Part shown: positions 42,001-63,078 of the stretch, in pieces
Layout: each line of letters opens with the position of its first letter
Position numbering within the stretch: the stretch's first letter is position 1
Source of the DNA: Macrostomum lignano
Taxonomy: Eukaryota
Reading direction: 5' to 3'
Assembly (NCBI GenBank): GCA_002269645.1
Contig: NIVC01000856.1
Location: 186,001-250,000 of the forward strand
Length of the DNA stretch: 64,000 nucleotides
Translations under genes and position numbers: made by a program
The notes under the pieces: generated by a model
The model's database searches: none
Seen by the model: the letters and a program-made list of their open reading frames with translations, nothing else
Told to the model about the DNA's origin: nothing

Positions 42001-45000
42001 AATAACAAAAACTGCTCACGTCTTCTCCGGATCGTACCCGTCTGTCTCTCCGGGCACAAAGTTCAAGTGGCCGCGCCGGAAGCCGTACTGATAGTTAAGC
42101 ACGCCCGTGCACACCATGCTGCCAGCCACAACAACGACCGAGGCCACTGATCCGAATATTAGGCCGCCACTGCAAGCATTGGTTAAAGTTGGGCGAAACT
42201 TAATTGATCAACAGATGTGACTTTCCTTGATTTGAATTTTAGGTGGTTAATTTAACACTAGAAAATCAGGTCTTTGACTCGCGGAATTATTTTTCTGTAA
42301 TTTGGAATGTCTCCAATTGGTGCCGTCCTAGAGAGTTCAAGGTCACGCTAAAAAATCACACCTCTCATGGACGAAGCTCCCTTTAATTTGGATCGTCTCT
42401 GATTGGCTACGGTACAAGACATTTCAAGGTCACGCTAAAATCACGCCACTTATGGAAGAAGCTCCCTATAATTTGGATGGTCTTTGATTGGCAACGGTAA
42501 GAGATTTCAAGGTCACGCTAGAAAATCACGCCACTCAAGGAAGAAGCTCCTTTAATTTGGATCGCCTCTGATTGGCTACGGTAAGAGATTTCAAGGTCAC
42601 GCTAAAAATCACGCCACTCATGGAAGACGCTCCTTTAATTTGGATGGTCTTTGATTGGCAACGGTAAGAGATTTCAAAGTCACGCTAGAAAATCACGCCA
42701 CTCAAGGAAGAAGCTCCTTTAATTTGGATCGCCTCTGATTGGCTACGGTAAGAGATTTCAAGGTCACGCTAAAAATCACGCCACTCATGGAAGACGCACC
42801 CTTTAATTTGAATCGTCTCTGATTGGCAACGGTATGAGATTTCAAGGTCACGCAAAAAATCACACCTCCGAACCGTGCATGCATAGTGAAAGTAAAAAAA
42901 CTCACAATACAAATGGCAGCAGTAGAAGCGGCGATAGCAGGTACATCTGCATATCATTGGCCAAGTACCAGGTGTGACCGAGGCACTGCAGAATGGAAAA
43001 TAGAGATTACTTTGGTCTAGGAAGAAGCCTTCGCACTCTAATTGAAATACAGTTACCATCTATGCCAATGCGAGTGATGTGGTAAATTATGGCTTCAGAG
43101 CATTTACGCCACTGTGCCATCCTGTTTGTCAGAGACAAATGTTTTTTATTAGAGAAAAGTATTTTAGTTTTACAACGATTTGTTAAAATAAACAAGCGGG
43201 AACAGAATAAAGATTTGATCGACGCAAAAACCGTCTGACGCGCGCACAATTTAATTTCGTGTCGTCAATTTTTCCCAACACTTCTTTGCGCAAAATAATC
43301 AAAGCATCGAACTGAAATGTTTGAATTCATCATCTCAGCCCCGCCGCTCCCTCCGCAGCCAGGCGATGAAATCATCTGTCTTGAAGGTCGTGGAGCCCGG
43401 CCCGACCGTCTGTTGGTATTTCTTCAGGTCCTGCTTGCGAATGCCCAGAGCGATGCGCTGGCCAAACGTAGTTGTAAAGTACTTGTCGACCTCGCGAAAC
43501 TCCAACTGGCCCGTCTCCTCTTCGTCGATGTTCTCGAATATCAGCTGCCAGGTCTCCTCTTCGCGGGCCTCCTCCGGGTAGATGCCGAGCAGCAGCTTGT
43601 ACTCGCGCAGCGTGATCTTGCCGTCCCGGTTCGCGTCCAGCACTTCGAACATCTCCAGAGCCGACGACTCAGTCAGGCCGTCCTTCTTGCACACCGCCTT
43701 CAAGCCTTCGAATGTGATGAAGCCGCGTTTCTCGGTGTCCACGTCGTTGAACCACTTCATCAGCAGCTGCTTGTCCGGCTTCTGCCGGGCCGCCGCCCCT
43801 GCCGCAGGCTGCTGCTGCGACTGCTGACGCGACGAAAACTTCTGCGATTTGCCGCTGCGCTGCTGACTCCGCCGCGGTGAATTCTGACGGCCGTCCATGA
43901 CTGCTCGGTGGTGCCGCTTGACGACTTCGTCGGTTTCACTACGCAAAACTGATTGACAGGCTTTGCAATCAAAAGCAAGCGGGGGGTCGTCGCATAGCAC
44001 AGGGGGATTGAGCGGTCGCTGCATTATTTAGTATTTATCAGTTTTTGTTCCCGCCAACTGGGATGCTGGGTTCCGGCCATAGACAATTCTGCTGCCAGAC
44101 TGATGCTTTTATGACTGGTCTCTAAGCTGGGACTTTAGGTCTGGCGGCTCTTACGAGGTTAGTGTATGAGGTGTTGTTATCAGCATTAGGAGTATAGGGG
44201 ATTTGCACTGGCATCACTCACATGTGGCAGTGAGGGATCGGGATTAACAGTTAGTGGTGGAGATTGGGGATCCGATATCTTCTGAGTAGGAATTATAGGG
44301 ATCAGAATTTGAGTAGGGATTATTGAGATCACAGATTTGTGATTCAATTTTGGAGTAGGGATTATTAAGATCTGGGGTTTGGGATCCGAATTTTGAGTAG
44401 GGATTACTGAGATCAGGGAGCGGGGATCCGAGAATCCGAGTTCCTTTCTCCTCACTCACAGCAATGGAGTCGCCCACATTGGCAAAGTTCTGCGCATATA
44501 ACATGAGCGCCCACCAGGACTTCGGACAGCCGGCCACATCCACTGGAGTCCGATCCGGCGATAGGAACGGCCCATTGCCGAAGTAGCCGGTCAGAGACCA
44601 GTGCCAGAACAGGAAGAACATCAGCACGGGCGTCAGCCTCCAATAGCGATGGAAATAGAAGAGCGCCCAGAATTTCCAACTTCTCAAAGTACTCCGGCAT
44701 TTCTCTTTGTCGGCGATGCCCACCTGGCGGCAGAACACGTAGGCTACCAGGGCGCCGCTGAGCATGAAGAATGAGTCCACTGAGGTGGTGGCGTTGATGA
44801 TGATGACGGCCTGCCAGCGCTTGCGGAAGTCGTTCAGGAGTTGCAGCGGGTTGTCTGGTGGGTGAGATTGGATGACAATAGATTAAGATAGGATAGGGCT
44901 ATATCAAGATAGGGTTACACTAGCTCAAGATCTGATGAGACTATAGATCTCTGATAAGACTAGATCACTCTGATGAGACTAGATCTCTCTGATAGGAATA

Positions 45001-48000
45001 AAACTAGGTTTAACGAGACTAGATCTCTCTGATGAGACTAGATCACTCTGAGACTAGATCACTCTGATGAGACTAGATCACTCTGATGAGACTAGATCTC
45101 TCTGATGAGACTAGATTACTCTGATGAGACTAGATCACTCTGATGAGACTAGATTACTCTGATGAGACTAGATCACTCTGATGAGACTAGATCACTCTGA
45201 TGAGACTAGATCACTCTGATGAGACTAGATCACTCTGATGAGACTAGATCACTCTGATGAGACTAGATCACTCTGATGAGACCAGATCACTCTGTTGAGA
45301 CTAGATCACTCTGATGAGACCAGATCACTCTGATGAGACTAGATCACTCTGATGAGACCAGATCACTCTGATGAGACTAGATCACTCTGATGAGACTAGA
45401 TCACTCTGATGAGACCAGATCACTCTGATGAGACTAGATCACTCTGATGAGACCAGATCACTCTGATGAGACTAGATCACTCTGATGAGACCAGATCACT
45501 CTGATGAGACTAGATCACTCTGATGAGACTAGATCACTCTGATGAGACTAGATCACTCTGATGAGACTAGATCACTCTGATGAGACTAGATCACTCTGAT
45601 GAGACTAGATCACTCTGATGAGACTAGATCACTCTGATGAGACTAGATCACTCTGATGAGACTAGATCACTCTGATGAGACTAGATCACTCTGATGAGAC
45701 TAGATCACTCTGATGAGACTAGATCACTCTGATGAGACTAGATCACTCTGATGAGACTAGATCACTCTGATGAAACTAGATCACTCTGATGAGACTAGAT
45801 CACTCTGATGAGACTAGATCACTCTGATGAGACTAGATCACTCTGATGAGACTAGATCACTCTGATGAGACTAGATCACTCTGATGAGACTAGATCACTC
45901 TGATGAAACTAGATCACTCTGATGAGACTAGATCACTCTGATGAGACTAGATCACTCTGATGAGACTAGATCACTCTGATGAGACTAGATCACTCTGATG
46001 AGACTAGATCACTCTGATGAGACTAGATCACTAGTATCGGGATAATACGATCGTTTTCTAGGGTCGGGTGAGGTTAGAAATTTCTAGAATCTGGGTGGGA
46101 CTAGATTTCTAAAGAACAGAGATCCCTCATAAATCGGCGTGCGAATAGATCACTGAGGTTAGATTTCTCTGAGATTGGTGATGAGACTAGATCTCTGCAA
46201 TCGGGTGAGATTAGATCGGCATGCGGTGCAGGCCCTCACCCAAAAGCGGGGCGATAAACAGTAGCGTGTGACCCAGAATGACCCAGAAGATGCTGAGCAC
46301 TCGAATCCCATTGATGCAGCCAAGCGATCCGCCGGAAGCCGGAGCGAACAGCTTGTTGAGGTTGCTGCGCAGGCAGAAAGCTCGGCAGATGTCTCTGTAA
46401 ACGTCTCCTGCAATGCGCGAATGCCTTGCTAACGTTGAAATGACCATATGTACTTTTCAATTTGTCTAAAGTTCTAAAGTGGATTCCGGTGACTCACTCT
46501 GCGCCTCGGGATATCGCGAGTCAACGAAGGCGGTCACAGCCGTGGCCAGAAGTATGAGAAACACGAGCAGTCCTGTGAGACAGCTGCAGTTGAGGATTGG
46601 CTGGATTGCTCTATGACCAGACACTCTGACCAACTACAATGCTGTATGACCACCTAGAATACTCTATGACCAACTACAATACTCTATGACCAACTAGGAT
46701 ACTTTATGACCAACTAGGATACTTTATGACCAACTAGGATACTCTATGACCAACTAGGATACTTAATGACCAACTAGGATACTCTATGACCAACTAGGAT
46801 ACTTAATGACCAACTAGGATACTCTATGACCAACTAGGATACTTAATGACCAACTAGGATACTCTATGACCAACTAGGATACTTTATGACCAACTAGGAT
46901 ACTCTATGAACAACTAGGATACTCTATGATCAACTGTAACATATACATGTAAGACACTGTATAATAAATTTAAACACTCTTATGACAAATTAAGACACTC
47001 CATAGCCAACTGAGACATTCTTATGATACACTAAGCCCCTATAGCCAACCAAGATATTATATGACCAAACAAGACAACTTATGACCAATAGGACACTGTA
47101 TGAACAATAATACACACCGTGACTCACTAAGGCAACCCCCATGGAGAACTGAAACATTCTATGACGCATAAAAAATTTTATGACCCACTAAGACACCATA
47201 CGGCTAACTAAGACGCACTCCTTGCAACTAGCATCCCAGAGCCCGCAGCACCCTCTCCCCGTCGCTCACATCACTGCGAGGGCGCCGCTGCTAAGCGGGT
47301 TGCTGGCCTCCACATTTGTCTGCGCGCAGCTCTTCACCACCAGCTTGTAGGACTTGATGGTGTCCACTATGCCTCCGATGCCCGGCACCCCCTGCAGGAT
47401 GGGGCCCAGCAGGTTGAGGACGATCTCCACCACTGGAATGTCGAAGATGATGCTGTTTTTTATTCAAGCTGAAGTCATAATGATGGCCATTTAGATTTAG
47501 TGACAGAATTACAGCTAATGACAGCCTGCGACAGTTAATAACAGCTATATGACAGCCTGTGACAGTTAATTACAGCTATATGGCAGCCTGTGACAGTCAA
47601 TTACAGCTATATGACACCCTGTGACAGTCAATTACAGCTATATGGCAGCCTGTGACAGTCAATTACAGCTATATGAAAGCCTGCGACAGTCAATTACAGC
47701 TAATGACCGCCTTTGACAGCCAGTGACGTATACATCATGTAAAAAATTGAATGGCAGACAAATACAGCAATTTACAGCCAAATAAATCCAAAATACAGCC
47801 AAATACAGCCAAAACACAGCTATGAAAGCCCCAACGCCGCAAGCCGGCAGATCCTCACCAAAATTGACAGCAATCTCAGCGTCGATCCCTTTGCACGGAT
47901 TCGGCAGGCACAGCGCCAGCTCCAGGCTGGTCTGCAGGCTGTCGCCGCCGCTGAACGCCCGGCCTCCACTATCGGTCGTTGAGTTGCCGCGACTCTTCAC

Positions 48001-49453
48001 GCCGAACATGCAATACCGACCGTTGGTGTGTAACATCAGCGTGCTCGTGTTGGTGCTGTCCTGGTACACCGGCAGCCGGATGCTTTCGCACTCCTCCCGG
48101 GACCCGATCCACCGGACATTGCCCAGCAGGATGCCCGCCTCCGGCTTGAAGATCGAGTCCAGCCCTGGTAATGGAGGAGGGAGGCTGGTCATTGCCTGTC
48201 TCTCTGCCTGCCTCTCTCCCTGCCTCTCTCCCTGCCTCTCTCCCTGCCTCTCTCCCTGCCTCTCTTCCTGCCTCTCTCCCTGCCTCTCTTCCTGCCTCTC
48301 TTCCTGCCTCTCTCCCTGCCTCTCTTCCTGCCTCTCTTCCTGCCTCTCTCCCTGCCTCTCTCCCTGCCCCTCTTACTGCCTCTCTTCCTGCCCCTCTTCC
48401 TGCCTCTCTTCCTGCCTGCCTCTCTTCCTGCCTCTCTCCCTGCCTCTCTTCCTGCCTCTCTCCCTGCCTCTCTGCCTGCCTCTCTCCCTGCCTCTCTCCC
48501 TTCCTCTCTCCCTTCCTTTCTCTCCCTTCCTTTCTCTCTCTGCCTCTCTCCCTGCCTCTCTCCCTTCCTCTCTCCCTTCCTCTCTCCCTTCCTCTCTCCC
48601 TTCTTCTCTCCCTTCCTATCTCCCTTCCTCTCTCCCTTCCTCTCTCCCTTCCTCTCTCCCTTCCTCTCTCCCTTCCTCTCTCCCTTCCTCTCTCCCTTCC
48701 TCTCTCCCTTCCTCTCTCCCTTCCTCTCTCCCTTCCTCTCTCCCTTCCCCTCTCTTTTCCTCTCTCCCTGCCTCTCCACCCTGCCTCTCTCCCCTCTCTC
48801 CCTTCCTTTCTCTCTCTGTCTCTCTCCCTGCCTCTCAGGCTGCCTCTCAGGCTGCCTCTCTCCCTGCCTCTCTCCCTGCCTCTCTTCCTGCCTCTCTCCC
48901 TGCCTCTCTTCCTGCCTCTCTCCCTGCCTCTCTCCCTCCCTCTCTCCCTGCCTCTCACCTGTCTCTCGCCTGCCTCCCTCCCTTCCTCTCTCTCTTCTTC
49001 TCTCTCTGCCTCTCTCCCTTCCCTCTCTTCCGGCTTCTCTCCCAGCCTCTCCTTCCCTACCCCAGTTAAACCAGCAGTCTCACATTGGAGAAACTGGTCC
49101 GACTCGGGCAAGTCGTTGCCGCCAACCAGGCCCAGGATGCTGCTCAGCAGGCTGCTGAACACGGTGCCGCACTCGGGCGACAGCTCCTGGAAGGCGTCGC
49201 CGCCTCGACGAGCCCGAAGCTCCACTGCCGAGGCCCGCAGCTTCTTGGCCGCCAGAGCCGGGTCGCGAGCCACCTCGCCAGCCGCGATGGCCAGAGCTCG
49301 CGCCAGCAGCTGCGGATTCACCCCCTCCTGCTGCTGCTGATTGTCTCTCCAAGAAGAAAAAGACGACGAAGAAGCAACGCAGCCTCCTCCTAGAAGAAAC
49401 AGCGCAAGCAAAGCCACCGGGAGGCTCCGATTTCTGCTACAACTGATCAGCAT
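39069..49453 (-). CDS. Nose resistant to fluoxetine-6 / O-acyltransferase-like protein (NRF domain + Acyl_transf_3); 12 exons, ~805 aa
   Basis: Exons 49453-49084, 48164-47859, 47432-47270, 46583-46498, 46407-46240, 44854-44460, 42985-42906, 42169-42020, 41889-41781, 41510-41318, 40816-40674, 39323-39069 (2418 nt). Motifs GILLGNVRWIGSREEC, CINGIRVLSIFWVILGH, SVDSFFMLSG, FYFHRYWRLTP, HTWYLANDMQ, YIKPYCRMGAY, PLARLSYCAYIVH, VEAPLLGLEK. Confidence 0.92.
39415..40600. repeat. 20-bp minisatellite with 480-bp higher-order duplication
   Basis: Unit AATGACCGATTTCAGCTCCC; lines starting at 39541 and 40021 are identical. Confidence 0.96.
40930..41165 (-). mobile_element. CORE-type tRNA SINE fragment, 5'-truncated
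   Basis: Minus strand reads GGTTCGATTC (B box) followed by CCTTGAGGAAGGCACTTAAC...CCCAGCTGTGAAATGGG, resembling the recalled CORE-SINE consensus CCTTGGGCAAGTCACTTAAC...CTGTAAAATGGG. Confidence 0.6.
42336..42870. repeat. 83/84-bp tandem repeat (167-bp dimer)
   Basis: TCAAGGTCA-anchored units at 42337, 42424, 42507, 42591, 42674, 42758, 42842. Confidence 0.92.
43335..43898 (-). CDS. Intronless EF-hand calcium-binding protein (calmodulin-like, ~187 aa) nested in intron 6 of the NRF-6-like gene
   Basis: Open frame with EF-hand loops DTEKRGFITFEG, DANRDGKITLRE, DEEETGQLEFRE. GC-rich codon usage like neighbouring exons. AATAAA on the minus strand at 43150-43145. An upstream in-frame ATG exists at 44024. 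Confidence 0.85.
   Translation of the reverse strand: MDGRQNSPRRSQQRSGKSQKFSSRQQSQQQPAAGAAARQKPDKQLLMKWFNDVDTEKRGFITFEGLKAVCKKDGLTESSALEMFEVLDANRDGKITLREYKLLLGIYPEEAREEETWQLIFENIDEEETGQLEFREVDKYFTTTFGQRIALGIRKQDLKKYQQTVGPGSTTFKTDDFIAWLRRERRG
44935..46032. repeat. 19-bp minisatellite
   Basis: Unit CTAGATCACTCTGATGAGA. Confidence 0.97.
46610..46935. repeat. 20-bp minisatellite
   Basis: Unit TATGACCAACTAGGATACTC. Confidence 0.93.
47515..47705. repeat. 31-bp minisatellite
   Basis: Unit TGACAGTCAATTACAGCTATATGGCAGCCTG. Confidence 0.9.
48198..49050. repeat. 12-bp CT-rich tandem repeat
   Basis: CCTCTCTCCCTG / CCTCTCTCCCTT units. Confidence 0.95.
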
Positions 49454-50630: not shown

Positions 50631-51209
50631 AAGGGTATCAGTGCAGTAAGACCAGCTAATATCAAACAAGGGCAGTAGTCACTTGTGAAAATTTTGTTGA
50701 ACACGGTAGGGGTTCAACGTACTGGCAGAGGGTATTTGATATTTGATAAAGTCATTTAAGCAATTTGAGCACTTTTTGGAGCACGATTAACCTCGAGAGA
50801 GAGAGCGCAGTCGCATTTTTAGTAAATTGAGCTGATAAAACTCAAACAAAAATGTTTTGCAAGCCCTAGAATAGACTGGATTTGCGGATAGATAAAACTG
50901 GTGAGCTTATAAAGTAGCCCGAGCTTTTAAAATCAAGCCATATTTCGAAATAAAGACTCCGGTTTGGCGATAAAAGAGCTAAGCTGTGTTGGCTATCTCA
51001 CTTGATTTTTGTATCATTTCTGCTGTACCGACTAATTATTTAACTATAATCGATTTGTTATATCGAGATAAAGAGTATTTTTATAACAAATAAAATAGTT
51101 CGTATAACCAATAGGTACAAACTTTTTCAAGCTTGACTTACTGACTGCATTTGAGGCAATTCTGTCCATTTCGCTGGCTCCTGAGTACACGCAAGAGTGC
51201 CAATGCTGG

Positions 51210-51760
51210 GCTGGCGCCCCTGGGTGCTGGCGCCCCTGGGTGCTGGCGCCCCTGGGTGCTGGCGCCCCTGGGTGCTAAAGCCCCTGGTGCTAAAGCCTCT
51301 GATGCTAAAGCCTCTGGTGCTAAAGCCTCTGGTGCTAAAGCCCCTGGTGCTAAAGCCCCTGGTGCTAAAGCCCCTGGTGCTAAAGCCCCTGGTGCTAAAG
51401 CCCCTGGTGCTAAAGCCCCTGGAGCTAAAGCCCCTGGTGCTAAAGCCCCTGGTGCTAAAGCCCCTGGTGCTAAAGCCCCTGGTGCTAAAGCCTCTGATGC
51501 TAAAGCCTCTGGTGCTAAAGCCTCTGGTGCTAAAGCCCCTGGTGCTAAAGCCCCTGGTGCTAAAGCCCCTGGTGCTAAAGCCCCTGGTGCTAAAGCCCCT
51601 GGTGCTAAAGCCCCTGGTGCTAAAGCCCCTGGTGCTAAAGCCTCTGGTGCTAAAGCCCCTGGTGCTAAAGCCCCTGGTGCTAAAGCCCCTGGTGCTAAAG
51701 CCCCTGGTGCTAAAGCCTCTGGTGCTAAAGCCCCTGGTGCTAAAGCCCCTGGTGCTAAAG
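51210..51760. repeat. 15-bp minisatellite (copy 1)
   Basis: Unit GCTAAAGCCCCTGGT. Confidence 0.96.
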
Positions 51761-51952
51761 GCGATTCCGCTGACTGCTGAGTACACACAAGCGCGCCAAT
51801 ACTGTACGCAGGCACTCATCACACGCTCACAAAGGGTGTACAGCGGCCCTGGCTTTCTAATTGTCAAGTAGGTACAATCTGTTTCTTGGAGGTTGACTGT
51901 TTCGTGTAATCAATTTTTGAGTTGAATTGGTTCGTCACAGTTCATTCCGCTG

Positions 51953-54900
51953 TCACATCTTCCTGGAGGCGGTTGCGCCAACTCTGCGTTTCAACGGTGG
52001 CGTCACGTTCTCGTAGCCATCTGGAGAGCTGCTCAGCACCGCCGCCGCCTCCGCCTCCTCCGATGCAGCCGCCGCCGCCTCCGCCTCCTCCGATGCAGCC
52101 GCCGCCGCCTCCGCCTCCTCCGATGCAGCCGCCGCCGCCTCCGCCTCCTCCGATGCAGCCGCCGCCGCCTCCGCCTCCTCCGATGCAGCCGCCGCCGCCT
52201 CCGCCGCCGCCGCGGCCGCTGCCACAATCAGCTCGGCTGATGCGTCATCCGCTTCGCTGTCTGCGACCTTGGAGGGGGGGGATTAAATATACAGACAGTT
52301 ACAGATAAGCATAATCATTAAATATAGTCACAGACAGTTGCCGACAAGATGCTCGCACAGACGGCCTTCCATTTCTGCTGTTCATAAGACACACCGGCAG
52401 ACAAATATTGCACAGAACAGTTGCTACTGGCAGCAACAGTCAATATAGTTGTATAAGAAATATGCGTAGACAGACTACTTTAAGTAGCAAACGCAGCATA
52501 ATTTCAACGGGTCGCCATTATAAACCCGAAATATCACAATTCTGAAAAGCACCTTCCATCAATATCTCGAAAAATCATGAACACGAAATATCACAAACCT
52601 GAAATATCACGAACCCGAAATATCACGAACCCGAAATATCACAAACCCGAAATATCACGAACCCGAAATATCACAAGCCCGAAATATCACAAACCTGAAA
52701 TATCACGAACCCGAAATATCACGAACCCGAAATATCACAAACCTGAAATATCACAAACCCGAAATATCACAAGCCTGAAATATCACGAACCCGAAATATC
52801 ACAAACCCGAAATATCACGAACCCGAAATATCCCGAACCCGAAATATCACGAACCCGAAATATCACAAACCCGAAATATCACAAACCCGAAATATCACAA
52901 ACCCGAAATATCACAAACCCGAAATATCACGAACCCGAAATATCACAAACCCGAAATATCACGAACCCGAAATATCCCGAACCCGAAATATCACGAACCC
53001 GAAATATCACAAACCCGAAATATCACAAACCCGAAATATCACAAACCCGAAATATCACAAACCTGAAATATCACGAACCCGAAATATCACAAGAGAGTTC
53101 AGTAACTCGCACTGCCCGACGAACTTGAAGCGCGCTTCGCCAACGCAAATCCCAATAGTTGGAATTGCAAGCCCCGATCCCTATAGATCAGTATTTATCC
53201 CCTAAATAATTGCTCAGCCACTGTAGAGCAGTTGATGATCCCAGAGCTCTACTGGATTATTGCTTTTGCAGCTTCCGTTTCTGCTTCAAGCAATAGAAGA
53301 TAATTGCCGTCCAAAAAAAGTCAAAACGCTGTTGGTGCTGCGGCACGCTCGCTTGCGACATCTGCCTGTTTTGGCGGTGGCGGTGGCGGGGTGGGGAAGA
53401 GAACCATGGATGGACCATTCGAGATGAAGCTTTGAGAGAGACTGCGTGATGGAACAGATCGATACAAGCAATTGTAGTGAGCTTGTGCCTTGTTAGCCCC
53501 AGTTTGTGCGCGCATGAGAGCGAAAGAGAGTGGAGGCTGAGCTGCAATGATGTAGCAGCTCGAGTCTGCAGAGGATTCTGCATGGATTGATATGAAGCAA
53601 GAACACACTTCTTCTGTTGCTTCTGTTATATTATTCTGCGTGTCCGAAAATCGGTGCAAAACTTTTGTGCAAAAACGATGCTCCGAATGAAGTGCAACAG
53701 TGGGAGCTCTCACTTCAGGAGCATTGATGGCGGGGCGCCAACATTGTGTGAATCCATATTGCAATACATTTTTTCTTAGTAAATATCAGCACAGAACTTT
53801 ATAGCCTCAATTGAGCTGGGCACAGGCACCAAAGTCTGAAAGCGCAATTAGCTCATTTTGGGCACTGGTAAAAGTATATGGAGCCCCTGGTGCTGGCGCC
53901 CCTCGTGCTGAAGCCCCTGGTGCTGGCGCCCCTGGTGCTGAAGCCCCTGGTGCTAAAGCCCCTGGTGCTAAAGCCCCTGGTGCTAAAGCCCCTGGTGCTA
54001 AAGCCCCTGGTGCTAAAGCCCCTGGTGCTGGCACCCCTGGTGCTAAATCCCCTGGTGCTGGCACCCCTGGTGCTAAATCCCCTGGTGCTATAGCCCCTGG
54101 TGCTAAATCCCCTGGTGCTAAATCCCCTGGTGCTAAAGCCCCTGGTGCTAAATCCCCTGGTGCTAAAGCCCCTGGTGCTAAATCCCCTGGTGCTAAATCC
54201 CCTGTTGCTAAAGCCCCTGGTGCTGGCACCCCTAGGGATAAAGCCCCTGTTGCTAAAGCCCCTGGTGCTGGCACCCCTGGTGCTGGCACCCCTGGTGCTG
54301 GCACCCCTGGTGCTGGCACCCCTGGTGCTGGCACCCCTGGTGCTGGCACCCCTGGTGCTGGCACCCCTGGTGCTGGCACCCCTGGTGCTGGCACCCCTGG
54401 TGCTAAATCCCCTGGTGCTAAAGCCCCTGGTGCTAAAGCCCCTGGTGCTAAAGCCCCTGGTGCTAAAGCCCCTGGTGCTAAAGCCCCTGTTGCTAAAGCG
54501 CCTGTTGCTAAAGCCCCTGGTGCTAAAGCCTCTGTTGCTAAAGCCCCTGGTGCTAAAGCCTCTGTTGCTAAAGCCCCTGGTGCTAAAGCCCTTGGTGCTA
54601 CGATAGACAAACCCGATAAAAACACATTGACTAAATTTGGTACATTTACCTTGTCTTTTCTAATTGCTCCTACTGGAAGTGAAAATCGAGAGCGGTATTT
54701 GAGAGTCTAAGGTATTGTAATGCATTCACAAAGTCTGCTGTAAATAGCTATAGACGGCTATAGATTATGCCTTGTAATTTAATAAATCCTGCCGATATGT
54801 AGCGAGGAAAACTTTATAAAGCTAAAATATAAATGTGGCACGAGCGAAAAAAGAGGACAGAGGCTGGTAGCTTTAATCCGATTTGCCAACCTCAATGTGG

Positions 54901-57797
54901 TGAATGGCGGTGAGCAGCAGGTGCCCGAACTCGTTCGCCACCACCGACTTCCAGGCGTCGCGAAATGCGCTCAGGCAGGCCATGGCGACGCGCGATTCCG
55001 GGGCTAGAAGGTCGTGAGCTCGAGCCGCGACTAGCAGCATGCTGCCCAGTGCCTGCAAGTGGTTGGGAATCAAATTGTGATGATGGGAGGAGGCGGAAAA
55101 TTAATAAGCAGTTTAGAACTCAGATTAGGAATTCAAAAGGATTGGATGTTTGGGATGGGATATTTGAGATGGGATATTTGAGATGGGATATTTGAGATGT
55201 GATATTTGAGATGGGATATTTGAGATGGGATATTTGAGATGGGAAATTTGAGATGGGATATTTGAGATGGGATATTTGAGATGGGATATTTGAGATGGGA
55301 TATTTGAGATGTGATATTTGAGATGGGATATTTGAGATGGGATATTTGAGATGGGAAATTTGAGATGGGATATTTGAGATGGGATATTTGAGATGGGATA
55401 TTTGAGATGGGATATTTAAGATGGGATATTTGAGATGGGATATTTGAGATGGGATATTTGAGATGGGATATTTGAGATGGGATATTTGAGATGGGATATG
55501 TTGGGATCAGACTGTAGAGGAAAGCCGTGACGGGCCAGCACCTGCAGGTGATACTCCAGCCAGTCAGCGCCCGCAGTCCAGCAATCGTCTCCGGTCGGCA
55601 GTCGAGCCGCGACGCCGCTCGCCGCTACGCAGGCGCGCCAGGCGCTTTCCAGCCGGCGCCATCGATAATTGGCGCCAGTCGGCGGCGCGTCAGCAGCTTC
55701 ATCGGCCTCGGCGATGAGGCCCGTCTGGCCGGCCAGCCGGAGAAGCTCCTCAGCGCTCGGCGGCAGCTGCTGTCGGCGGAGTCGGCGCAGGCGGGACAGC
55801 ACGCAGTCGGGCTGGGCGGCAGCGGACAGGCCGTCCAGGCAGTGTCGGGTGTGCGCGAAGGCCTCCTCGCGTAGGCGCTGGGCGCAGCGGCTCTCCGGAT
55901 GCCGCAGGTGCAGCTTGCTGGCCGCCAGCAGCAGCGGCAGCGCCTTCTCCAGACTCGACCGGGTGAGCGCCAGACGACAGCGGGCCGGCTCCGACCTCAG
56001 GTCGGCCTGGCGCTCACCGGACAGGCGGCCGAGCTGCACCAGGTGCTCGCCAAGGCTGGCAAAGGCCGGCATGAAGTCGGCGAATCTGATGGTGTGTAAC
56101 GTGGCGCAGTGATCAGATTTTGGTTGCAATGGTGTCCACAGCAGAAAGGGGGCCGTAGCCCAGCGGTAGCGCAGCTGCTCTGGTGTGCCAGCGACCCAGG
56201 CTCGATTCCAAGTGCAGTCACATTAATTTGAGGCTAAATTGGAAGCTCGGCTTGGCTCTACTGAGCTGTTCGTGGCCGGCACTGACACCACCTCCAACAC
56301 CATCCGCTGGGCGCTGCTGTACGCCTGTCTCTACCCGGAGTGCCAGGCTCGAGTCCAGGCCGAGATTGACGCCCAGATCGGCCGCAATCGCCTGCCGGAG
56401 CAAGTGTAGGCAAGTGTACATGCCAGTGTAAGTGTAGGCAAGTGTAAGTGCAGGCAAGTGTACATGCCTGCCTAACGACAAAATAAAGTCAGGGCCGCTG
56501 TGCACTCCTGTGTGTGCCTGTGCGCATGACTGCGTACGTATCCGAGCGCTTGTGTTCCTGCTCAGGAAAGTCGGCGGAATGTGACAATGTCGCTTAAATT
56601 AATAGAATCAGCTGACAATTTACACAGCAGGATGCTCTGAGCTGAGCCGGTTCTCTAAAATCTCCAGAGAGCCTCCTTCCCCTGTACCTGGTGCAGTCCT
56701 CCAGGCACTCCAGGCAGGCCGTCGCTCGCTCCCCGCAGGCCAGCAGCTGCTGCAGGTTCAAACGGTCCGCCAGCGCCATCGTCCGCGTCATCGCTTCGAC
56801 CAGACGACGCGCGGCGAGTCGAACCGCGTCGCCGTCTGTAGCGAACTTGGGCGACAGCACGGTGGTTGTCATTGTCAGACGAGCCACGGCTCGACCGGCG
56901 GCGGCCGCGTCGCTACACGCAGCGTCGATGGCCTCGGCTAGTCGAGGAGGCGACTCGACGGCAACGCGCCGGCCAGCTGTGGCGAACTGGTCTGCGGCGC
57001 GGGCCACCCAGGCCCCGGTGTCGGCCAACAGCTGCGCTGTGGATTCGGCGGGCGGCGCCGAGGAAGAGCGCAGGCTGATCTCATCGTCACCGCCTGAGCG
57101 GCGCTTCCGGAACTTGAACAGGTTCTGCAGCTGCGGGCAGGTGAGTGTTGCTGTTGGTTGGTGTTGGTATTGGTGCCGAGGTTGCTAGTGCCGCGGGTGT
57201 TGGTGCACGGGGTGTTGGTGCATCGGGTGTTGGTGTATGGGGTTTTGTGCATGGAGTGTTGGTGCACGGGGTGTTAGTGTATGGGGTGTTGTTGTATAGG
57301 GTGTTGGTGTATGGGGTGTTGTTGTATAGGGTGTTGGTGTATGGGGTGTTGGTGTATGGGGTGTTGGTGTATGGGGTGTTGGTGCACGGGGTGTTGGTGT
57401 ATGGGGTGTTGGTGTATGGGGTGTTGATGTATGGGGTGTTGGTGCCGGGGCTGTTGTTGTATGGGGTGTTGGTGCATGGGTGTTGATTCATGGCGTGTTG
57501 CATTTGGTGCTGGGTGTGCGGGGTGTTGGTGCCCAGATTTAATTAAATCTCAACTATTTTGTTTCAATAAAACTTAAACTTAAAACTGTTTCGATAAACA
57601 TGAATTTCTCTCACATGCTTTACCAAGGGAAGCAACGCATTTTCTACCGACTTAGTCTCTGTGGTGGCCAGCAGGGAAGAGATTTCATCAAGGCTGGCAG
57701 TGCTGCCAGTCGAACTTTCGGCCGGAAACTCGGATTGAATTTCTATTTTAGTTTGAATAAATCTACTAGGCGCTCTATTTGGAGAGTAATAGCTCAT
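51953..57797 (-). CDS. CTNNAL1: Alpha-catulin-like (vinculin/alpha-catenin family), apparently shortened; 3' exons uncertain
   Basis: Exons 57797-57615, 57130-56688, 56085-55542, 55052-54891, probable last exon 52267-51953; extra exon(s) at ~53100-53660 are possible. Motifs TKSVENALLPLVKH, AARRLVEAMTRTMALADRL, LSGERQADL, LEKALPLLLAASKLHLRHP, APESRVAMACLSAFRDAW match recalled alpha-catulin segments. Confidence 0.75.
52039..52197. repeat. 30-bp coding tandem repeat, 5 copies (AAAAASEEAE on the minus strand)
   Basis: Unit GCCGCCGCCGCCTCCGCCTCCTCCGATGCA. Confidence 0.9.
52578..53090. repeat. 14-bp minisatellite
   Basis: Unit ACCCGAAATATCAC-like. Confidence 0.93.
53881..54600. repeat. 15-bp minisatellite (copy 2, same family as 51210)
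   Basis: Units GCTAAAGCCCCTGGT / GCTGGCACCCCTGGT. Confidence 0.96.
55150..55498. repeat. 14-bp minisatellite
   Basis: Unit GAGATGGGATATTT. Confidence 0.96.
56149..56220 (+). mobile_element. tRNA-derived SINE-like head (Pol III A and B boxes)
   Basis: 72 nt starting GGGGCCGTAGCCCAGCGG; A-box-like TAGCCCAGCGG 56156-56166, B-box-like GGCTCGATTCC 56199-56209. Acceptor and anticodon stems are imperfect, so not a functional tRNA. Confidence 0.6.
56260..56402 (+). pseudogene. 143-bp inverted duplicate of part of the P450 I-helix exon (source 59995-60137)
   Basis: Read-through comparison gives 142/143 identity to the reverse complement of 59995-60137 (one C/T difference); encodes TELFVAGTDTTSNTIRWALLYACLYPECQARVQAEIDAQIGRNRLPE. 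Confidence 0.95.
57145..57530. repeat. 15-bp GT-rich minisatellite
   Basis: Unit GTGTTGGTGTATGGG. Confidence 0.92.
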
Positions 57798-58772: not shown

Positions 58773-61700
58773 TCAGCAGGAATCATCGGCGATTCTCTGC
58801 GGCTGCCTGGCCGAGAAAATGATCCGATGCGCGCCAGGCGCGTGCACGATGCCGTCGCTTCCAATTTTGATGTCCTCCAGATTCTTCACGCTGTCCGGGT
58901 GCAGCCGGGCGCTGTGCTGCTGGAGGATCCCGGCGATAAAGAGGAACAGCTCCTGGCGGGCCAGACTCTCGCCAAGGCAGGCTCGCTTACCGACGCCGAA
59001 TGGTACGAGGTGCTCGTTCGGTTGGTACTCGCCCGTGTCGACTGCCAGGAATCGTTCGGGCTGGAAAGCTTCCGGACTGGACCAGAGCTCCGGGTCGTGG
59101 TGGATGCCGTATAGGTTGGTCATGATCAGATCGTCCGAAGAGATGTCGTAGCCCTGGAGTCAAAGCGAATTAACGGCTTTTGGCTTTTTGAAGGTGCTTC
59201 GGCAAGTGGTGTTGGCACTGGGTTTTCTGGTCTTTGTATTGGATTTCATGTTGAGGCTTGGGTGTTTGGGCTGGTGTATTGGGGCTGGGGTGTTGAGGCT
59301 GGGGTGTTGAGGCTGGGGTGTTGGGGCTGGGGTGTTGAGGCTGGGGTGTTGGGGCTGGTGTATTGGGGCTGGGGTGTTGAGGCTGGAGTGTTGAGGCTGG
59401 GGTGTTGGGGCTGGGGTGTTGGGGCTGGGGTGTTGAGGCTGGGGTGTTGGGGCTGGGGTGTTGGGGCTGGGGTGTTGGGGGCTGTGGTTTAGAGGCTGGG
59501 ATGTTGGGGCTGGGGTGTTGGGGCTGGGGTGTTGAGGCTGGGGTGTTGGGGCTGGGGTGTGGGGGGCTGTGGTTTAGAGGCTGGGATGTTGGGGCTGGGG
59601 TGTTGAGGCTGGGGTGTTGGGGCTGGGGTGTTGGGCTGGGGTGTTGGGGCTGGGGTGTTGGGGCTGGGGTGTTGGGGCTGTAGTGTTGGGGCTGGAGTAT
59701 GGGTTGTGGTGTTTTGAGACTAAGTAGTTAATGCTTTGGGTGTTGGGGCTGGGTAATTAGTGACTAGGCTGTTGATGCTGAGGTTTCAGCGTTTTGCGGT
59801 GTAGGTACGTGGGTTGCTAGAGCCTGACTATTTCGGCGGTACCATTCAGCCATCGATTCACCATCGTGCAAAAGCTCACCATAAACTCAACATCGCGGGT
59901 GCACCTGTGTAAAACAGCAAACGGCGCCAGAGTGGCAAATCGTTGAACCTCGTCAATAAACGCCAGCGTGTAGGGCATCCGTTTGCGGTCCCGGTGCTCC
60001 GGCAGGCGATTGCGGCCAATCTGGGCGTCAATCTCGGCCTGGACTCGAGCCTGGCACTCCGGGTAGAGACAGGCGTACAGCAGCGCCCAGCGGATGGTGT
60101 TGGAGGTGGTGTCAGTGCCGGCCACGAACAGCTCAGTCAAGGTGCGCTTCAGTTGGAAGTCGTCGAATGTGTGGTCCTAAGGATTGTCATGAATGTGTTA
60201 TTGTAACTTGAGTTGAGTGCACTATTCTACGCCGGGCCAGTCTGGCCGGCATCTCCCCCCCCCCTCCTCAGATATTTTCTGACTCACCCCCTTCACTTCT
60301 GCGCGTGCGTACCCTCCCCCCTCTCTGCCTAGGCCTTGTCTGTTGTTCAACCCCCATTCTCTGCGTGCGACCCCCCCATTCTTTGCGTGCGACCCCGCCC
60401 CATTCTTTTGTTAGCTTTGCTGCCCCGCCCCTGTTTGTGATTGGTTGCCAGTCCCAGTCTGCCGTGCTGCGCCCCGGCGATTGGCTGGTACGGCTCATGT
60501 TTTTCCTATGCTGATTTCTAAGCCCCCTTTTCTGCCTTTATCCCGCGCCCTCAACCCCCAGTTTGCTGCCTATTTATTCGGACCCCCTTGAGACCCCATT
60601 CTCGTCATCTTCGTGGCTCTCCGGTGATTTTGCTAGCGTTGGTTGCTATTAAGTGTCCGAATTGCCCTACAAATACAATTAAAATATCGATACTCCCACT
60701 GCTCTGTCGGCGCTGTTCCCGAGTTGTACGACTGAAATCGCGGCTGGTAAGCCTTCCAATTTGCAAGTCATTTGGGTCTGCATCTGTACTAGGCACCTTA
60801 GAGGGATTAAGTGCGTCGTACGCCGGTCCCACCCCAAGCAGCTCTGCGTCGTACGCGAGTCTGTAGGCTGTCGTGCGTCGTACGCTCGAGCAGCCTAGTC
60901 CCGACGGACACCGCGTCGTACGCGTGTCAGTGGAGGACCGCAGCCGGGGTCAGTACGCGAACCCGGGTCTGGGAAAGGGGCACGAAAGGACCGAGCCCTT
61001 GAGCCCCATCACAACAGGATGGAGAACATCACATCGTCGCGTTATTGTCCATAGGCGTAGGAACGTTTCAAAAAGTGGGGGGGGGGCAGGTTCAGTGCCG
61101 GATTTAGGGGGAGGGGGGCGCACAAGGTCGAGTTAGATTTTTCTATTTCTTTATATTGAAAATGCACATTTATCATGTACCAATTATTTTTAGAATCAAT
61201 GTTGTCACCACTCATTTTAGCGCCGCAGGCACTCATTTTAGCGCCGCAGACACTCATTTTAGCGCCGCAGACACTCATTTTAGCGCCGCAGACACTCATT
61301 TTAGCGCCGCAGACACTCATTTTAGCGCCGCAGACACTCATTTTAGCGCCGCAGACACTCATTTTAGCGCCGCAGACACTCATTTTAGCGCCGCAGGCGC
61401 TATGTTTTGTCGCTCTGCAGCAAAATGCATTCATGCAAAGCAGCAAAAATAAAAAATAAGAGTAAAAAATGAGCTAAAAGTCTACATTTTGCATTTAAAA
61501 TGTGAAGGGGCCAGATACCATTACTGCCCCCCCGTTCCTACGCCTATGTTATTTTCATCCGTCAACCGCGCCATTCACAACTGGCTGAGCCACAAACACC
61601 AGCTGCACTGGAACAGCTGCTTCGAATATCGGCAAACGCAAGCTGCGATGCCTGCTATGAACCGGAAATTTCATATAATACCTGATTTCTTTAAACAAAA

Positions 61701-63078
61701 TTGACCCTAGAGAGATTTGTATTGATCATATTTTGGTCAACACATCACCTTCAACACTACAACAAAGCGCAAAGACGTCACCTGGCTGCTCGCTAAGGTT
61801 GGACGAGCTCTGACTACCCCCGGACCGGATCCGTGACCTTGCGCGCATTCGTCCGAATCGTCCGATTCGTTGGGCGATGAGTTGTGAAAGAAGCTGCTCT
61901 TCTGAGAAATGAAACCCCTTTAATTCAATGCTCATTTCTGTTCCCCATTTAGTCGATTGCACTCACTGAAGAGGATACAGTCGGCCGGATGCACTCCCTG
62001 TGTGACAGTACTTCTGTAGCTTTAATTAAGAGCTTGGATACCCCCTCCGACCAGGAACGTTTAAAACTGCATGGTGATTTCTGAATTTTCATTCAGCTAC
62101 CAATAGTTCGCTACAATACCTTCTTCCTTCCGTTCAGCTTCTCCTGCTCCATCAGAAAAGCGTCCAGGAAGTCGTTTGGCGAGCTGACTCCGGCCAGCTG
62201 GGCCCGGTGAGCGTCGATTTGCATCTGGCAGAAGCCGTGCGTCACCTTCAGATTCCGCTGCACAACGTACACGTCAACGCCGAGCAGCTCTAGCAGGCGC
62301 ATCACTCCCGGGATCTGGTACAGCAACGGAAATCCCACCGGGATGAATCTGGCCAAGTCGCCGCCCTGCAGATTCTCCTGGGTGGCCGCGAGGAAAGCTT
62401 CGAACCGGTCGTCCTGGGAGCCAGCCCGATAGCCGAACAGCATCACGCTGATGACGTTGGCGATGGCCCGGCAGAGCACTTCAGTGGTGTCCACGCCAGC
62501 TTCGCCAGCCGTGTTGAACTGATCGCGCAGGTCCTGCAGCTCCTGATGGATTGAGTCCTCGGTGCCGGCTCGCGCAAATCCGAAATCGCGAAGAACCTGA
62601 CGATGTGTGGAGTTGCATGGTACTTACGGTGGTGCAACATACTCACTGGGTTGATCATTCATTACTTAAACTCTACTGTGAGGTGTTCCTAATAAAGAAC
62701 GTAATTTTTAAGATTATAAAATCTGGAAAGGTTTATATTTGTGCCTTGGGCATCTCAAATGTCCACGTCCGACCAACGAAAGGCCCACCTTGAGAGCAAA
62801 CCGCCTGTGCTCGCGCCACAGCTCGCCTTCTGAGGACACGATGCCCTTTCCGTGCGTAAGGCTGTTTATATAGTTGGAATTCATCCGACCGCTGAACACA
62901 TCGCCGAATTCCTGCGAGGCCAGAGCCTCCTTGACGGCCGCATAGCTGTTCAACACGACGAACCGACGTGCGCCGAGTCTGTAGCTGACCAGGTCGCCGT
63001 AGCGTTTGCGCCAATCTGCGTGAGCAGCCAGGAATGTCGGCCGAGGCAGGTTCGGCAGGTTGCCTAGCAGAGGCCATC
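58773..63078 (-). CDS. Cytochrome P450, CYP2 clan; 5'-incomplete (membrane-anchor exon presumably beyond the window end)
   Basis: Exons 63078-62789, 62596-62120, 60176-59880, 59153-58773. Motifs GWPLLGNL, WREHRRFAL (WxxxR), ELFVAGTDTT (I-helix), EVQR (ExxR), FQPERF (PERF), PFGVGKRACLG (heme). The first visible exon starts at an AG acceptor in phase 1. Confidence 0.95.
59260..59700. repeat. 14-bp G-rich tandem repeat
   Basis: Unit GGGGCTGGGGTGTT. Confidence 0.93.
60393..60484. promoter_or_regulatory. Promoter-like cluster (2 GC boxes, 2 inverted CCAAT boxes) in a P450 intron
   Basis: CCCCGCCCC at 60393 and 60423; GATTGG at 60439 and 60479. Motif presence only. Confidence 0.3.
60803..60971. 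other. Array of four (plus one variant) hairpins with invariant GCGTCGTACGC apex
   Basis: Motif at 60813, 60846, 60875 and 60913, each embedded in a different extended inverted repeat. Confidence 0.8.
61050..61548. mobile_element. hAT-type MITE (499 bp) with internal 21-bp minisatellite
   Basis: TIRs CATAGGCGTAGGAACG / CGTTCCTACGCCTATG (perfect 16 bp); 8-bp TSD ttattgtc / ttattttc. Confidence 0.85.
61208..61398. repeat. 21-bp minisatellite inside the second hAT MITE
   Basis: Unit ACTCATTTTAGCGCCGCAGAC. Confidence 0.95.
61557..61800 (+). mobile_element. Short LINE fragment (post-RNase H region), interrupted upstream by a hAT MITE
   Basis: SSVNRAIHNWLSHKHQLHWNSCFEYRQTQAAMP has the same I..W....H...W......RQ....P pattern as the 18800-18930 fragment. 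Confidence 0.5.

Follow-up and report, generated by a model that had tools for sequence, protein, structure and literature searches.

Hairpin motifs with one identical apex in a probable solo long terminal repeat inserted into a P450 intron of Macrostomum lignano

A stretch of 64,000 nucleotides from the flatworm Macrostomum lignano (assembly GCA_002269645.1, contig NIVC01000856.1, positions 186,001 to 250,000; hereafter the window, numbered from its first letter) was analyzed, in which an intron of a cytochrome P450 gene harbors an insertion of 831 bp that is flanked by a target-site duplication (TSD) and is absent from a sister locus. An array of hairpins falls within the last 210 nt of this insertion and comprises four exact copies of the motif GCGTCGTACGC, three of which cap hairpins predicted to be robust. 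Judged from its sequence, the insertion is very probably a mobile element, and its anatomy makes it probable that this element is the solo long terminal repeat (LTR) of an LTR retrotransposon. For the array a role is proposed tentatively and with somewhat less than even confidence: it may be a cis-element of the solo LTR, acting as a multivalent protein-docking or dimerization signal in the 5' leader RNA of the retroelement.

The motif occurs exactly four times in the 64 kb, with all copies inside 111 bp and in the same orientation, at distances of 33, 29 and 38 bp between successive copies, and no further copy was found in the window when up to one mismatch was allowed. Dinucleotide shuffles lead to an expectation of 0.22 copies, and four copies were reached in none of 100 shuffles. 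As the first-pass annotation of this DNA had described, the copies are identical and their spacers unrelated: the core is conserved at 100% (44/44 bases), and the 10-nt flanks of successive copies are 25–30% identical, which is the random level. In the 132 kb of M. lignano DNA compared in total (the window plus 68 kb of other loci) no other exact 11-mer forms a cluster whose flanks are dissimilar, once low-complexity sequence and the edges of minisatellites are set aside. Taken alone, GCGTCGTACGC can fold back into four base pairs closing a 3-nt loop, as only about 0.4% of random 11-mers would.

The spacing would suit an ordinary decayed minisatellite of ~33 bp, of which the core alone survived, as the window is very rich in arrays with periods of 12–42 bp and the distances of 29–38 bp lie inside that range. 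However, Tandem Repeats Finder (TRF) detected no array at the hairpin site even with a score of 30, although the neighboring 22-bp and 21-bp arrays were found; the flanks of the units are as dissimilar as stated while the core is invariant, and neutral decay would not spare an 11-mer four times and leave its flanks self-complementary. This explanation is effectively refuted; the match to an ordinary decaying ~33-bp tandem repeat, which the first-pass annotation had named as a refuting outcome, did not turn up.

Hairpin structures and energies were calculated with RNAfold, z values refer to dinucleotide shuffles, and pair probabilities were taken from partition-function folds of 60600–61015 and 60700–61100. 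The array consists of the following features.

60813, 60846, 60875 and 60913 (starts), plus strand only: exact copies of the apex motif GCGTCGTACGC.
60803–60830, plus strand: hairpin 1 (HP1), GGGAUU..G.GCGU-CGU-ACGC-C-GGUCCC with two G-U pairs; −9.2 kcal/mol, z −1.33; weak.
60838–60864, plus strand: HP2, 7-bp lower stem with one 3' bulge, bulged U, GCGU/ACGC upper stem and CGU loop; −11.0 kcal/mol, z −1.57.
60864–60897, plus strand: HP3, the strongest hairpin, 10-bp lower stem, U-U 1x1 loop and the same GCGU/ACGC stem with CGU apex; −19.2 kcal/mol, z −3.99.
60907–60928, plus strand: HP4, 5-bp lower stem GACAC/GUGUC, bulged C and the same apex as HP1–HP3; −9.6 kcal/mol, z −2.18.
60944–60966, plus strand: candidate fifth hairpin, CCGGG/CCCGG, with GTACGC in a 13-nt loop and without the apex motif; z −1.28.
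60971–61008, plus strand: further candidate hairpin, GGGGC../..GCCCC, without the apex motif; z −1.52, not robust in context.

HP1 to HP4 follow a common design of an unrelated lower stem of 5–10 bp, an unpaired pyrimidine directly 5' of the motif (U, U, U and C, respectively, the third being part of the U-U 1x1 loop of HP3), the GCGU/ACGC stem and the CGU triloop. From HP1 to HP4 the lower-stem pair adjoining the unpaired base alternates (G-C, C-G, G-C, C-G), and the two arms of HP3 differ by one indel and one mismatch. According to the folding model HP2, HP3 and HP4 are robust hairpins capped by GCGTCGTACGC, their pair probabilities in context amounting to ~0.95, at least 0.95 (in each context and on both strands) and ~0.9. 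The first-pass annotation had each copy top its own inverted repeat; the stems were recovered as drawn, and HP2–HP4 proved robust, but HP1 reaches a pair probability of at most 0.15 in plausible transcript contexts. A fifth variant of the same hairpin, also claimed there, had to be abandoned, the common part being only GTACGC, placed in the 13-nt loop. In a fold of the whole element, the pairing of HP1, HP2 and HP4 faces competition from the copies of a 22-bp repeat further upstream.

With the apex held fixed, the pairing of the 12-nt flanks was scored separately from the motif. Compared with random pairs of genomic flanks, the values for HP1 to HP4 were p = 0.13, 0.08, 0.005 and 0.034, and compared with shuffles of their own flanks p = 0.26, 0.13, 0.0055 and 0.10; Fisher combination resulted in ~0.001 and ~0.005, respectively. 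The inverted-repeat symmetry is real, with HP3 carrying most of the signal and HP2 and HP4 contributing.

Several results weigh against an interpretation as RNA structure. Folded with RNA parameters, the 181-nt array shows a modest z of −1.83 on the plus strand, where 11 of 200 shuffles fold as well, and −0.95 on the minus strand, which leaves the folding z-score, named in the first-pass annotation as a ground for refutation, at the borderline. In sliding 120-nt windows over the insertion the array is the most structured part, yet z is only −1 to −1.8, on both strands. The stems are almost entirely Watson-Crick paired, G-U pairs being confined to HP1, and the minus strand folds as well; HP1 and the fifth hairpin, the latter with a pair probability of at most 0.03 on the plus strand, are not robust in context. 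With DNA parameters z is −2.98 on the plus and −2.46 on the minus strand (dinucleotide shuffles). Because the pairing is Watson-Crick and equal on both strands, an RNA hairpin is indistinguishable here from a DNA palindrome: the data show inverted-repeat symmetry, and RNA, single-stranded DNA and duplex DNA all fit as the active form.

It is accordingly conceivable, although we rate it as unlikely, that the array is a homotypic cluster of DNA sites, in which GCGT-N3-ACGC is bound by a dimeric or zinc-finger protein of host or element as an enhancer, insulator or silencer-recruiting array, and in which the hairpins are incidental. An invariant core with variable spacers of ~30 bp, a palindromic motif whose signal is equal on both strands and stronger with DNA than with RNA parameters, and related inverted motifs in U3-like repeats of the insertion would all agree with such a cluster, as would the clustered heat-shock elements known in M. 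lignano LTRs (PMC12801592). It leaves unexplained, however, why the flanks are self-complementary (combined p ~0.001–0.005) and why a single unpaired base regularly stands beside the apex; moreover, a palindromic site needs no uniform orientation, yet 4/4 copies point one way, and a place downstream of the putative TATA and poly(A) signals, while normal in an insulator, would be unusual in an enhancer. The 5' untranslated region (UTR) of Drosophila gypsy contains twelve Su(Hw) binding sites, which resemble the array in their identical short cores, single orientation, unrelated spacers of ~30 bp and location near the 5' LTR of a retroelement, but which act as double-stranded DNA, are non-palindromic and have flanks that do not pair.

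The strand symmetry would also be expected from a mutational by-product without function, where reverse transcription or replication, by folding back or switching templates at the small palindrome GCGT..ACGC, copied the flank in inverted form and the arms decayed afterwards. Imperfections in the form of single indels and mismatches, as in decaying perfect palindromes (one each in HP3), the Watson-Crick pairing of the arms, the weakness already seen in HP1 and the single known copy of the element are compatible with this scenario. We nevertheless regard it as improbable: fold-back would have had to happen independently four times, each at one of four identical 11-mers already in place, the origin and the perfect conservation (44/44 bases) of these 11-mers would stay unexplained, and comparable clusters are lacking elsewhere in the 132 kb from this genome, which is very rich in repeats.

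The proposal of a retroelement signal depends on the nature of the insertion, which became apparent by comparison with the sister locus L247 (GenBank NIVC01000019.1, same assembly, fetched as the locus of BOX15_Mlig013417g1). This locus is ~93% identical to the window region and aligns collinearly with it, until the alignment jumps from window position 61016 to 60182, exactly 60185–61015 (831 bp) being absent. At base level L247 reads GTGGTCCTA-AGGGT-GGAGAA, and the window reads GTGGTCCTA-AGGAT-(831 bp)-AGGAT-GGAGAA, so that a TSD of 5 bp, exact on both sides in the window, faces a single AGGGT in the empty site. The pyrimidine tract of L247 is intact and directly adjoins the splice acceptor (gene strand: TTCTCCACCCTTAG/G), whereas in the window the two are separated by the 831 bp, which argues for an insertion in the window and not for a microhomology-mediated deletion in L247. 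The latter may be either a homeologue or a redundant haplotype or allele of the window locus, M. lignano being a hidden allotetraploid (PMC12801592). The hairpins are therefore probably a signal of a mobile element rather than of the P450 host gene. The insertion and its parts can be listed as follows, with motifs and borders of U3, R and U5 read by eye from the plus strand sequence.

60180–60184: left TSD copy AGGAT, the window reading ...CTA-AGGAT before the insertion.
60185–61015, plus strand (putative transcription, antisense to the P450 gene): insertion of 831 bp, most likely a solo LTR.
60185–60191, plus strand: 5' terminus TGTCATG, forming an inverted repeat with CATCACA at 61007–61013 (6/7 complementary).
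60280–60484, plus strand: putative U3-like enhancer/promoter block with TGACTCA, 22-bp repeats, GC boxes and inverted CCAAT boxes.
60280–60286, plus strand: TGACTCA, AP-1-like, read from the sequence.
60351–60408, plus strand: 22-bp repeat CCCCCATTCTTTGCGTGCGACC in 2.5 copies, found by TRF.
60440–60444 and 60480–60484, plus strand: inverted CCAAT boxes ATTGG, read from the sequence.
60571–60577, plus strand: putative TATA-like TATTTAT, read from the sequence.
60596–60602, plus strand: initiator-like CCATTCT, putative start of R, 27 nt downstream of TATTTAT.
60678–60683, plus strand: ATTAAA, a variant poly(A) signal with a GT-rich stretch after it; putative R/U5 border near 60700.
61016–61020: right TSD copy AGGAT, with GGAGAA directly after it.

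The insertion is regarded as a solo LTR because it combines a length of 831 bp, a 5-bp TSD, a TG start, a short inverted repeat and a U3-R-U5-like layout. On the plus strand the motifs succeed one another as two CCAAT boxes, TATTTAT, CCATTCT and ATTAAA, which is the order of U3-R-U5 in an LTR, and the putative U5-like end of ~315 nt closes with the hairpins. The most likely source would be a Ty3/Mdg4-type (or other) LTR retrotransposon of M. lignano, a species in which ~409 families of LTR retrotransposons have been reported, the majority Ty3/Mdg4 and as a rule low in copy number (PMC12801592). LTRs of this species (Ty3/Mdg4 with Mag, Gmr1/Osvaldo and CsRN1; Bel/Pao; Ty1/Copia; PMC12801592) are similar to the insertion in size, 5-bp TSD, TG start and short terminal inverted repeat, and furthermore in the putative internal order from promoter to poly(A), in presence/absence polymorphism between duplicated loci and in the possession of clustered short motifs. 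They are dissimilar in that the published clustered regulatory motifs, namely heat-shock elements, are situated in U3 (PMC12801592), while the hairpins are situated in the putative U5, in that the insertion shows an extra AC beyond the expected CA, and in that neither a full-length relative nor a second LTR was retrieved in the DNA compared.

Some of these observations speak against an LTR. The function of the motifs and borders, read by eye, is inferred, and the 3' end is not a clean ...CA, CATCACA being followed by the two extra bases AC (61014–61015) before the TSD. Neither the window nor the 68 kb of other M. lignano DNA (L247–L249) yielded a second copy of the element, with the consequence that the LTR is identified solely by anatomy. 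A 791-aa chimera of the stop-free six-frame segments of the insertion had no match at E ≤ 0.001 in a collection of 5.8 billion proteins. Two P450 paralogue loci of M. lignano (P0008, P0011) contain neither the element nor the motif. Counted in favor of a solo LTR, on the other hand, are the open reading frames (ORFs) of the insertion, which have neither homologues nor coding potential nor a Pfam match, and the lack of a long terminal inverted repeat and of tRNA or Rfam matches.

The termini could also belong to a non-autonomous DNA transposon, with the motifs as subterminal repeats to which the transposase would bind, in the manner of En/Spm, Ac/Ds or Harbinger, possibly reading them as hairpins or cruciforms. 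A TSD of 3–5 bp, short terminal inverted repeats TTGTSATG and symmetric motifs would be in keeping with this, the four plus-strand copies lying 92–202 bp from the right end and two to three related copies (GCGTGCGACCC, 9/11 identical when read inward) lying in opposite orientation 115–210 bp from the left end. The terminal repeat is, however, only 7–8 bp long and imperfect; beyond TGTCATG/CATCACA no longer terminal inverted repeat was found, a local alignment of the two ends being no better than shuffles (p = 0.96). The relatives at the left end are 2-mismatch matches at chance level (7 found in the window, 5.85 expected), these left-end relatives belong to one 22-bp tandem repeat, and the internal order of CCAAT box, GC box and TATA resembles a Pol II promoter and not transposon ends. 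We know of no DNA-transposon superfamily that combines such a TSD with such termini and judge this origin quite improbable. Transib elements, considered for the 5-bp TSD, were discarded with regard to the termini, which are not CACNNTG-like.

Other classes of elements and RNAs were likewise rejected. A SINE or other tRNA-derived element was dismissed, ARAGORN finding no tRNA in 59000–62500 and neither end having an A-rich or simple-repeat tail; a Penelope-like element was dismissed with no hammerhead match even at E up to 10. MicroRNA clusters possess stems of ~22 bp or more, whereas the stems here have 9–14 pairs in total and the apex, not the arm, is invariant. Rfam 15, including iron-responsive elements (IREs), hammerheads, retroviral psi and frameshift elements, gave no gathering-level match in the window, and a permissive search (E up to 10) of 60000–61400 had a best score of 17.9 bits against a 40-bit cut-off (E = 0.25), in line with the earlier remark that the array was not recognized as a named element. 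The pattern GCGTCGTACGC-N(10-40)-GCGTCGTACGC retrieved hundreds of matches from metagenome, viral and prokaryotic collections, all of them in GC-rich bacteria, and in BLAST comparisons of a 900-bp region with loci fetched from these matches similarity was confined to the motif itself; the pair pattern was given up as too unspecific for finding relatives. A literature search with the motif string returned three unrelated papers only.

M. lignano trans-splices, and a spliced-leader RNA gene was considered on account of GGTAAG at 60746 below the promoter-like block. It was rejected with no spliced-leader or Sm-type match in Rfam, the block being part of a TSD-flanked insertion; the sequence of the insertion is, moreover, unlike what we take to be the spliced leader of M. 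lignano.

Within the insertion, some further motifs were recorded. The splice-donor-like GGTAAG (60746–60751) and a perfect TATCGATA, a DRE-like palindrome (60685–60692), both lie between the putative poly(A) signal and the hairpins. CCCCATTCT occurs four times (60345–60408 and 60594–60602), three times heading the 22-bp repeats and once at the putative transcription start. Found in the 22-bp repeats as well is GCGTGCGAC, which after reverse complementation differs from the hairpin apex by two mismatches; such inverted relatives are located at 60363 and 60385.

If the insertion is a solo LTR, the proposed role of the array can be pictured as follows. An 831-bp element would have entered the P450 intron, leaving 8 nt between itself and the downstream 3' splice site and duplicating AGGAT. 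Its plus strand would present a U3-like promoter block, an R-like stretch ending after ATTAAA and the ~315-nt U5-like end with the hairpins, and in a full-length element the 5' leader of its genomic RNA would carry the hairpins immediately before the primer-binding site. There, the repetition of an identical apex might allow multivalent docking of a single element protein, for which Gag/nucleocapsid would be the obvious candidate; alternatively, the apex might serve as a dimerization surface with kissing or duplex contacts via the self-complementary CGUACG. In both cases the lower stems would merely present the apex. Among the options offered by the first-pass annotation, which extended from protein-binding RNA to hairpins of single-stranded DNA, a retroelement 5' UTR fits best with an array at the end of a TSD-flanked, LTR-like insertion absent from L247, while the selection on structure postulated there goes further than the data.

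The array shares features with several known systems. Gammaretroviral psi comprises hairpins with GACG tetraloops, and alphaviruses possess arrays of GGG loops. As in these retroviral and RNA-virus packaging signals, dispersed ones included (PMC6281560), several hairpins with differing stems and an identical short apical motif are found in or near a 5' leader, which for the array is a putative one, those of the viruses being read multivalently by capsid or Gag. The invariant part is larger in the array (4-bp stem plus triloop, 11–12 nt) and the triloop is CGU; its function, unlike theirs, is one that we infer. In the 3' UTR of the transferrin receptor five IREs are present, so that one protein is offered many sites. 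Both arrays consist of tandem hairpins in which the lower stem varies, one pyrimidine bulges out on the 5' side, the short upper stem is conserved and the loop does not change, but an IRE has a 5-bp upper stem and a CAGUGN hexaloop and belongs to a host mRNA, and the likeness is an analogy of design only; the IRE models were among the Rfam families of which none was matched by the array even at E up to 10. Roquin constitutive decay elements similarly consist of a short stem with a pyrimidine-purine-pyrimidine triloop (CGU in the present case), several copies being possible per RNA, but differ in their occurrence in host 3' UTRs and in conserved closing pairs U-A, U-A and C-G.

It is possible, though rather doubtful, that an IRE-like module, repeated three to four times in the U5 of a flatworm LTR retrotransposon and either read by Gag/nucleocapsid or dimerizing via CGUACG, constitutes an undescribed class of leader signal. 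To our knowledge no such leader signal is known for flatworm retrotransposons, and the array would, if this is true, be the first defined packaging or dimerization signal of a platyhelminth retrotransposon. If functional, it would offer a compact, sequence-defined handle on RNA selection or dimerization by such an element, and a short repeated protein-binding hairpin would be a candidate for an orthogonal RNA tag. M. lignano is a model capable of transgenesis, and in vivo tests of LTR promoters have already been carried out in it (PMC12801592).

The surrounding exons, on the minus strand, specify a CYP2-like P450, with M. lignano BOX15_Mlig013417g1 as best match (98% identity), which bears out the earlier placement of the array in a P450 intron; an exact-product look-up of the ORF of the last P450 exon had nothing on record. 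The promoter-like motif cluster (60240–60600), previously taken for a neighbor of the hairpins, belongs to the same 831-bp insertion, and for annotation this means that promoter cluster and hairpins are one polymorphic mobile-element insertion and not a regulatory feature of the P450 gene. Nor could an adjoining LINE fragment be upheld, as neighboring ORFs gave no Pfam, reverse-transcriptase or endonuclease signal; the right side consists of ordinary host intron common to L247, including a MITE-like element with a minisatellite. The insertion is located 8 nt upstream of the AG acceptor of the P450 exon 59817–60180 (minus strand; site 60176–60192). The original pyrimidine tract is now found at 61016–61035, and the new upstream sequence (…ACACATTCATGACAATCCTTAG/G) offers a much poorer acceptor context. 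With the acceptor cut off from its tract, the P450 copy of the window may be mis-spliced or impaired.

The MITE-like element (61050–61548) has perfect terminal inverted repeats of 16 nt, CATAGGCGTAGGAACG and CGTTCCTACGCCTATG, each followed by a G-run or C-run, and encloses a minisatellite of 21 bp x 9 (61209–61396); L247 has the element too, with an apparently longer array. An inverted copy (143 nt, 99% identical) of part of the P450 I-helix exon (59995–60137) was detected at 56260–56402, 3.6 kb away and beyond the last exon. At this place L247 has ~14 bp compared with ~197 bp in the window, which suggests that the inverted copy is a window-specific insertion or duplication as well. Minisatellites are present in the window by the dozen, with periods of 12–42 bp, many of them ~1 kb long and 90–97% regular (for instance 2566–3480, 7120–8450, 13400–14400, 26020–27400, 44935–46150 and 51131–52300), and most long ORFs of the window are translated minisatellite arrays. 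Fragments of other host genes comprise, all on the minus strand, an ankyrin-repeat exon (14644–15336), an exon with a pair of EF-hands (43335–44024) and an exon for the N-terminal domain of nose-resistant-to-fluoxetine (NRF) proteins (47659–48192).

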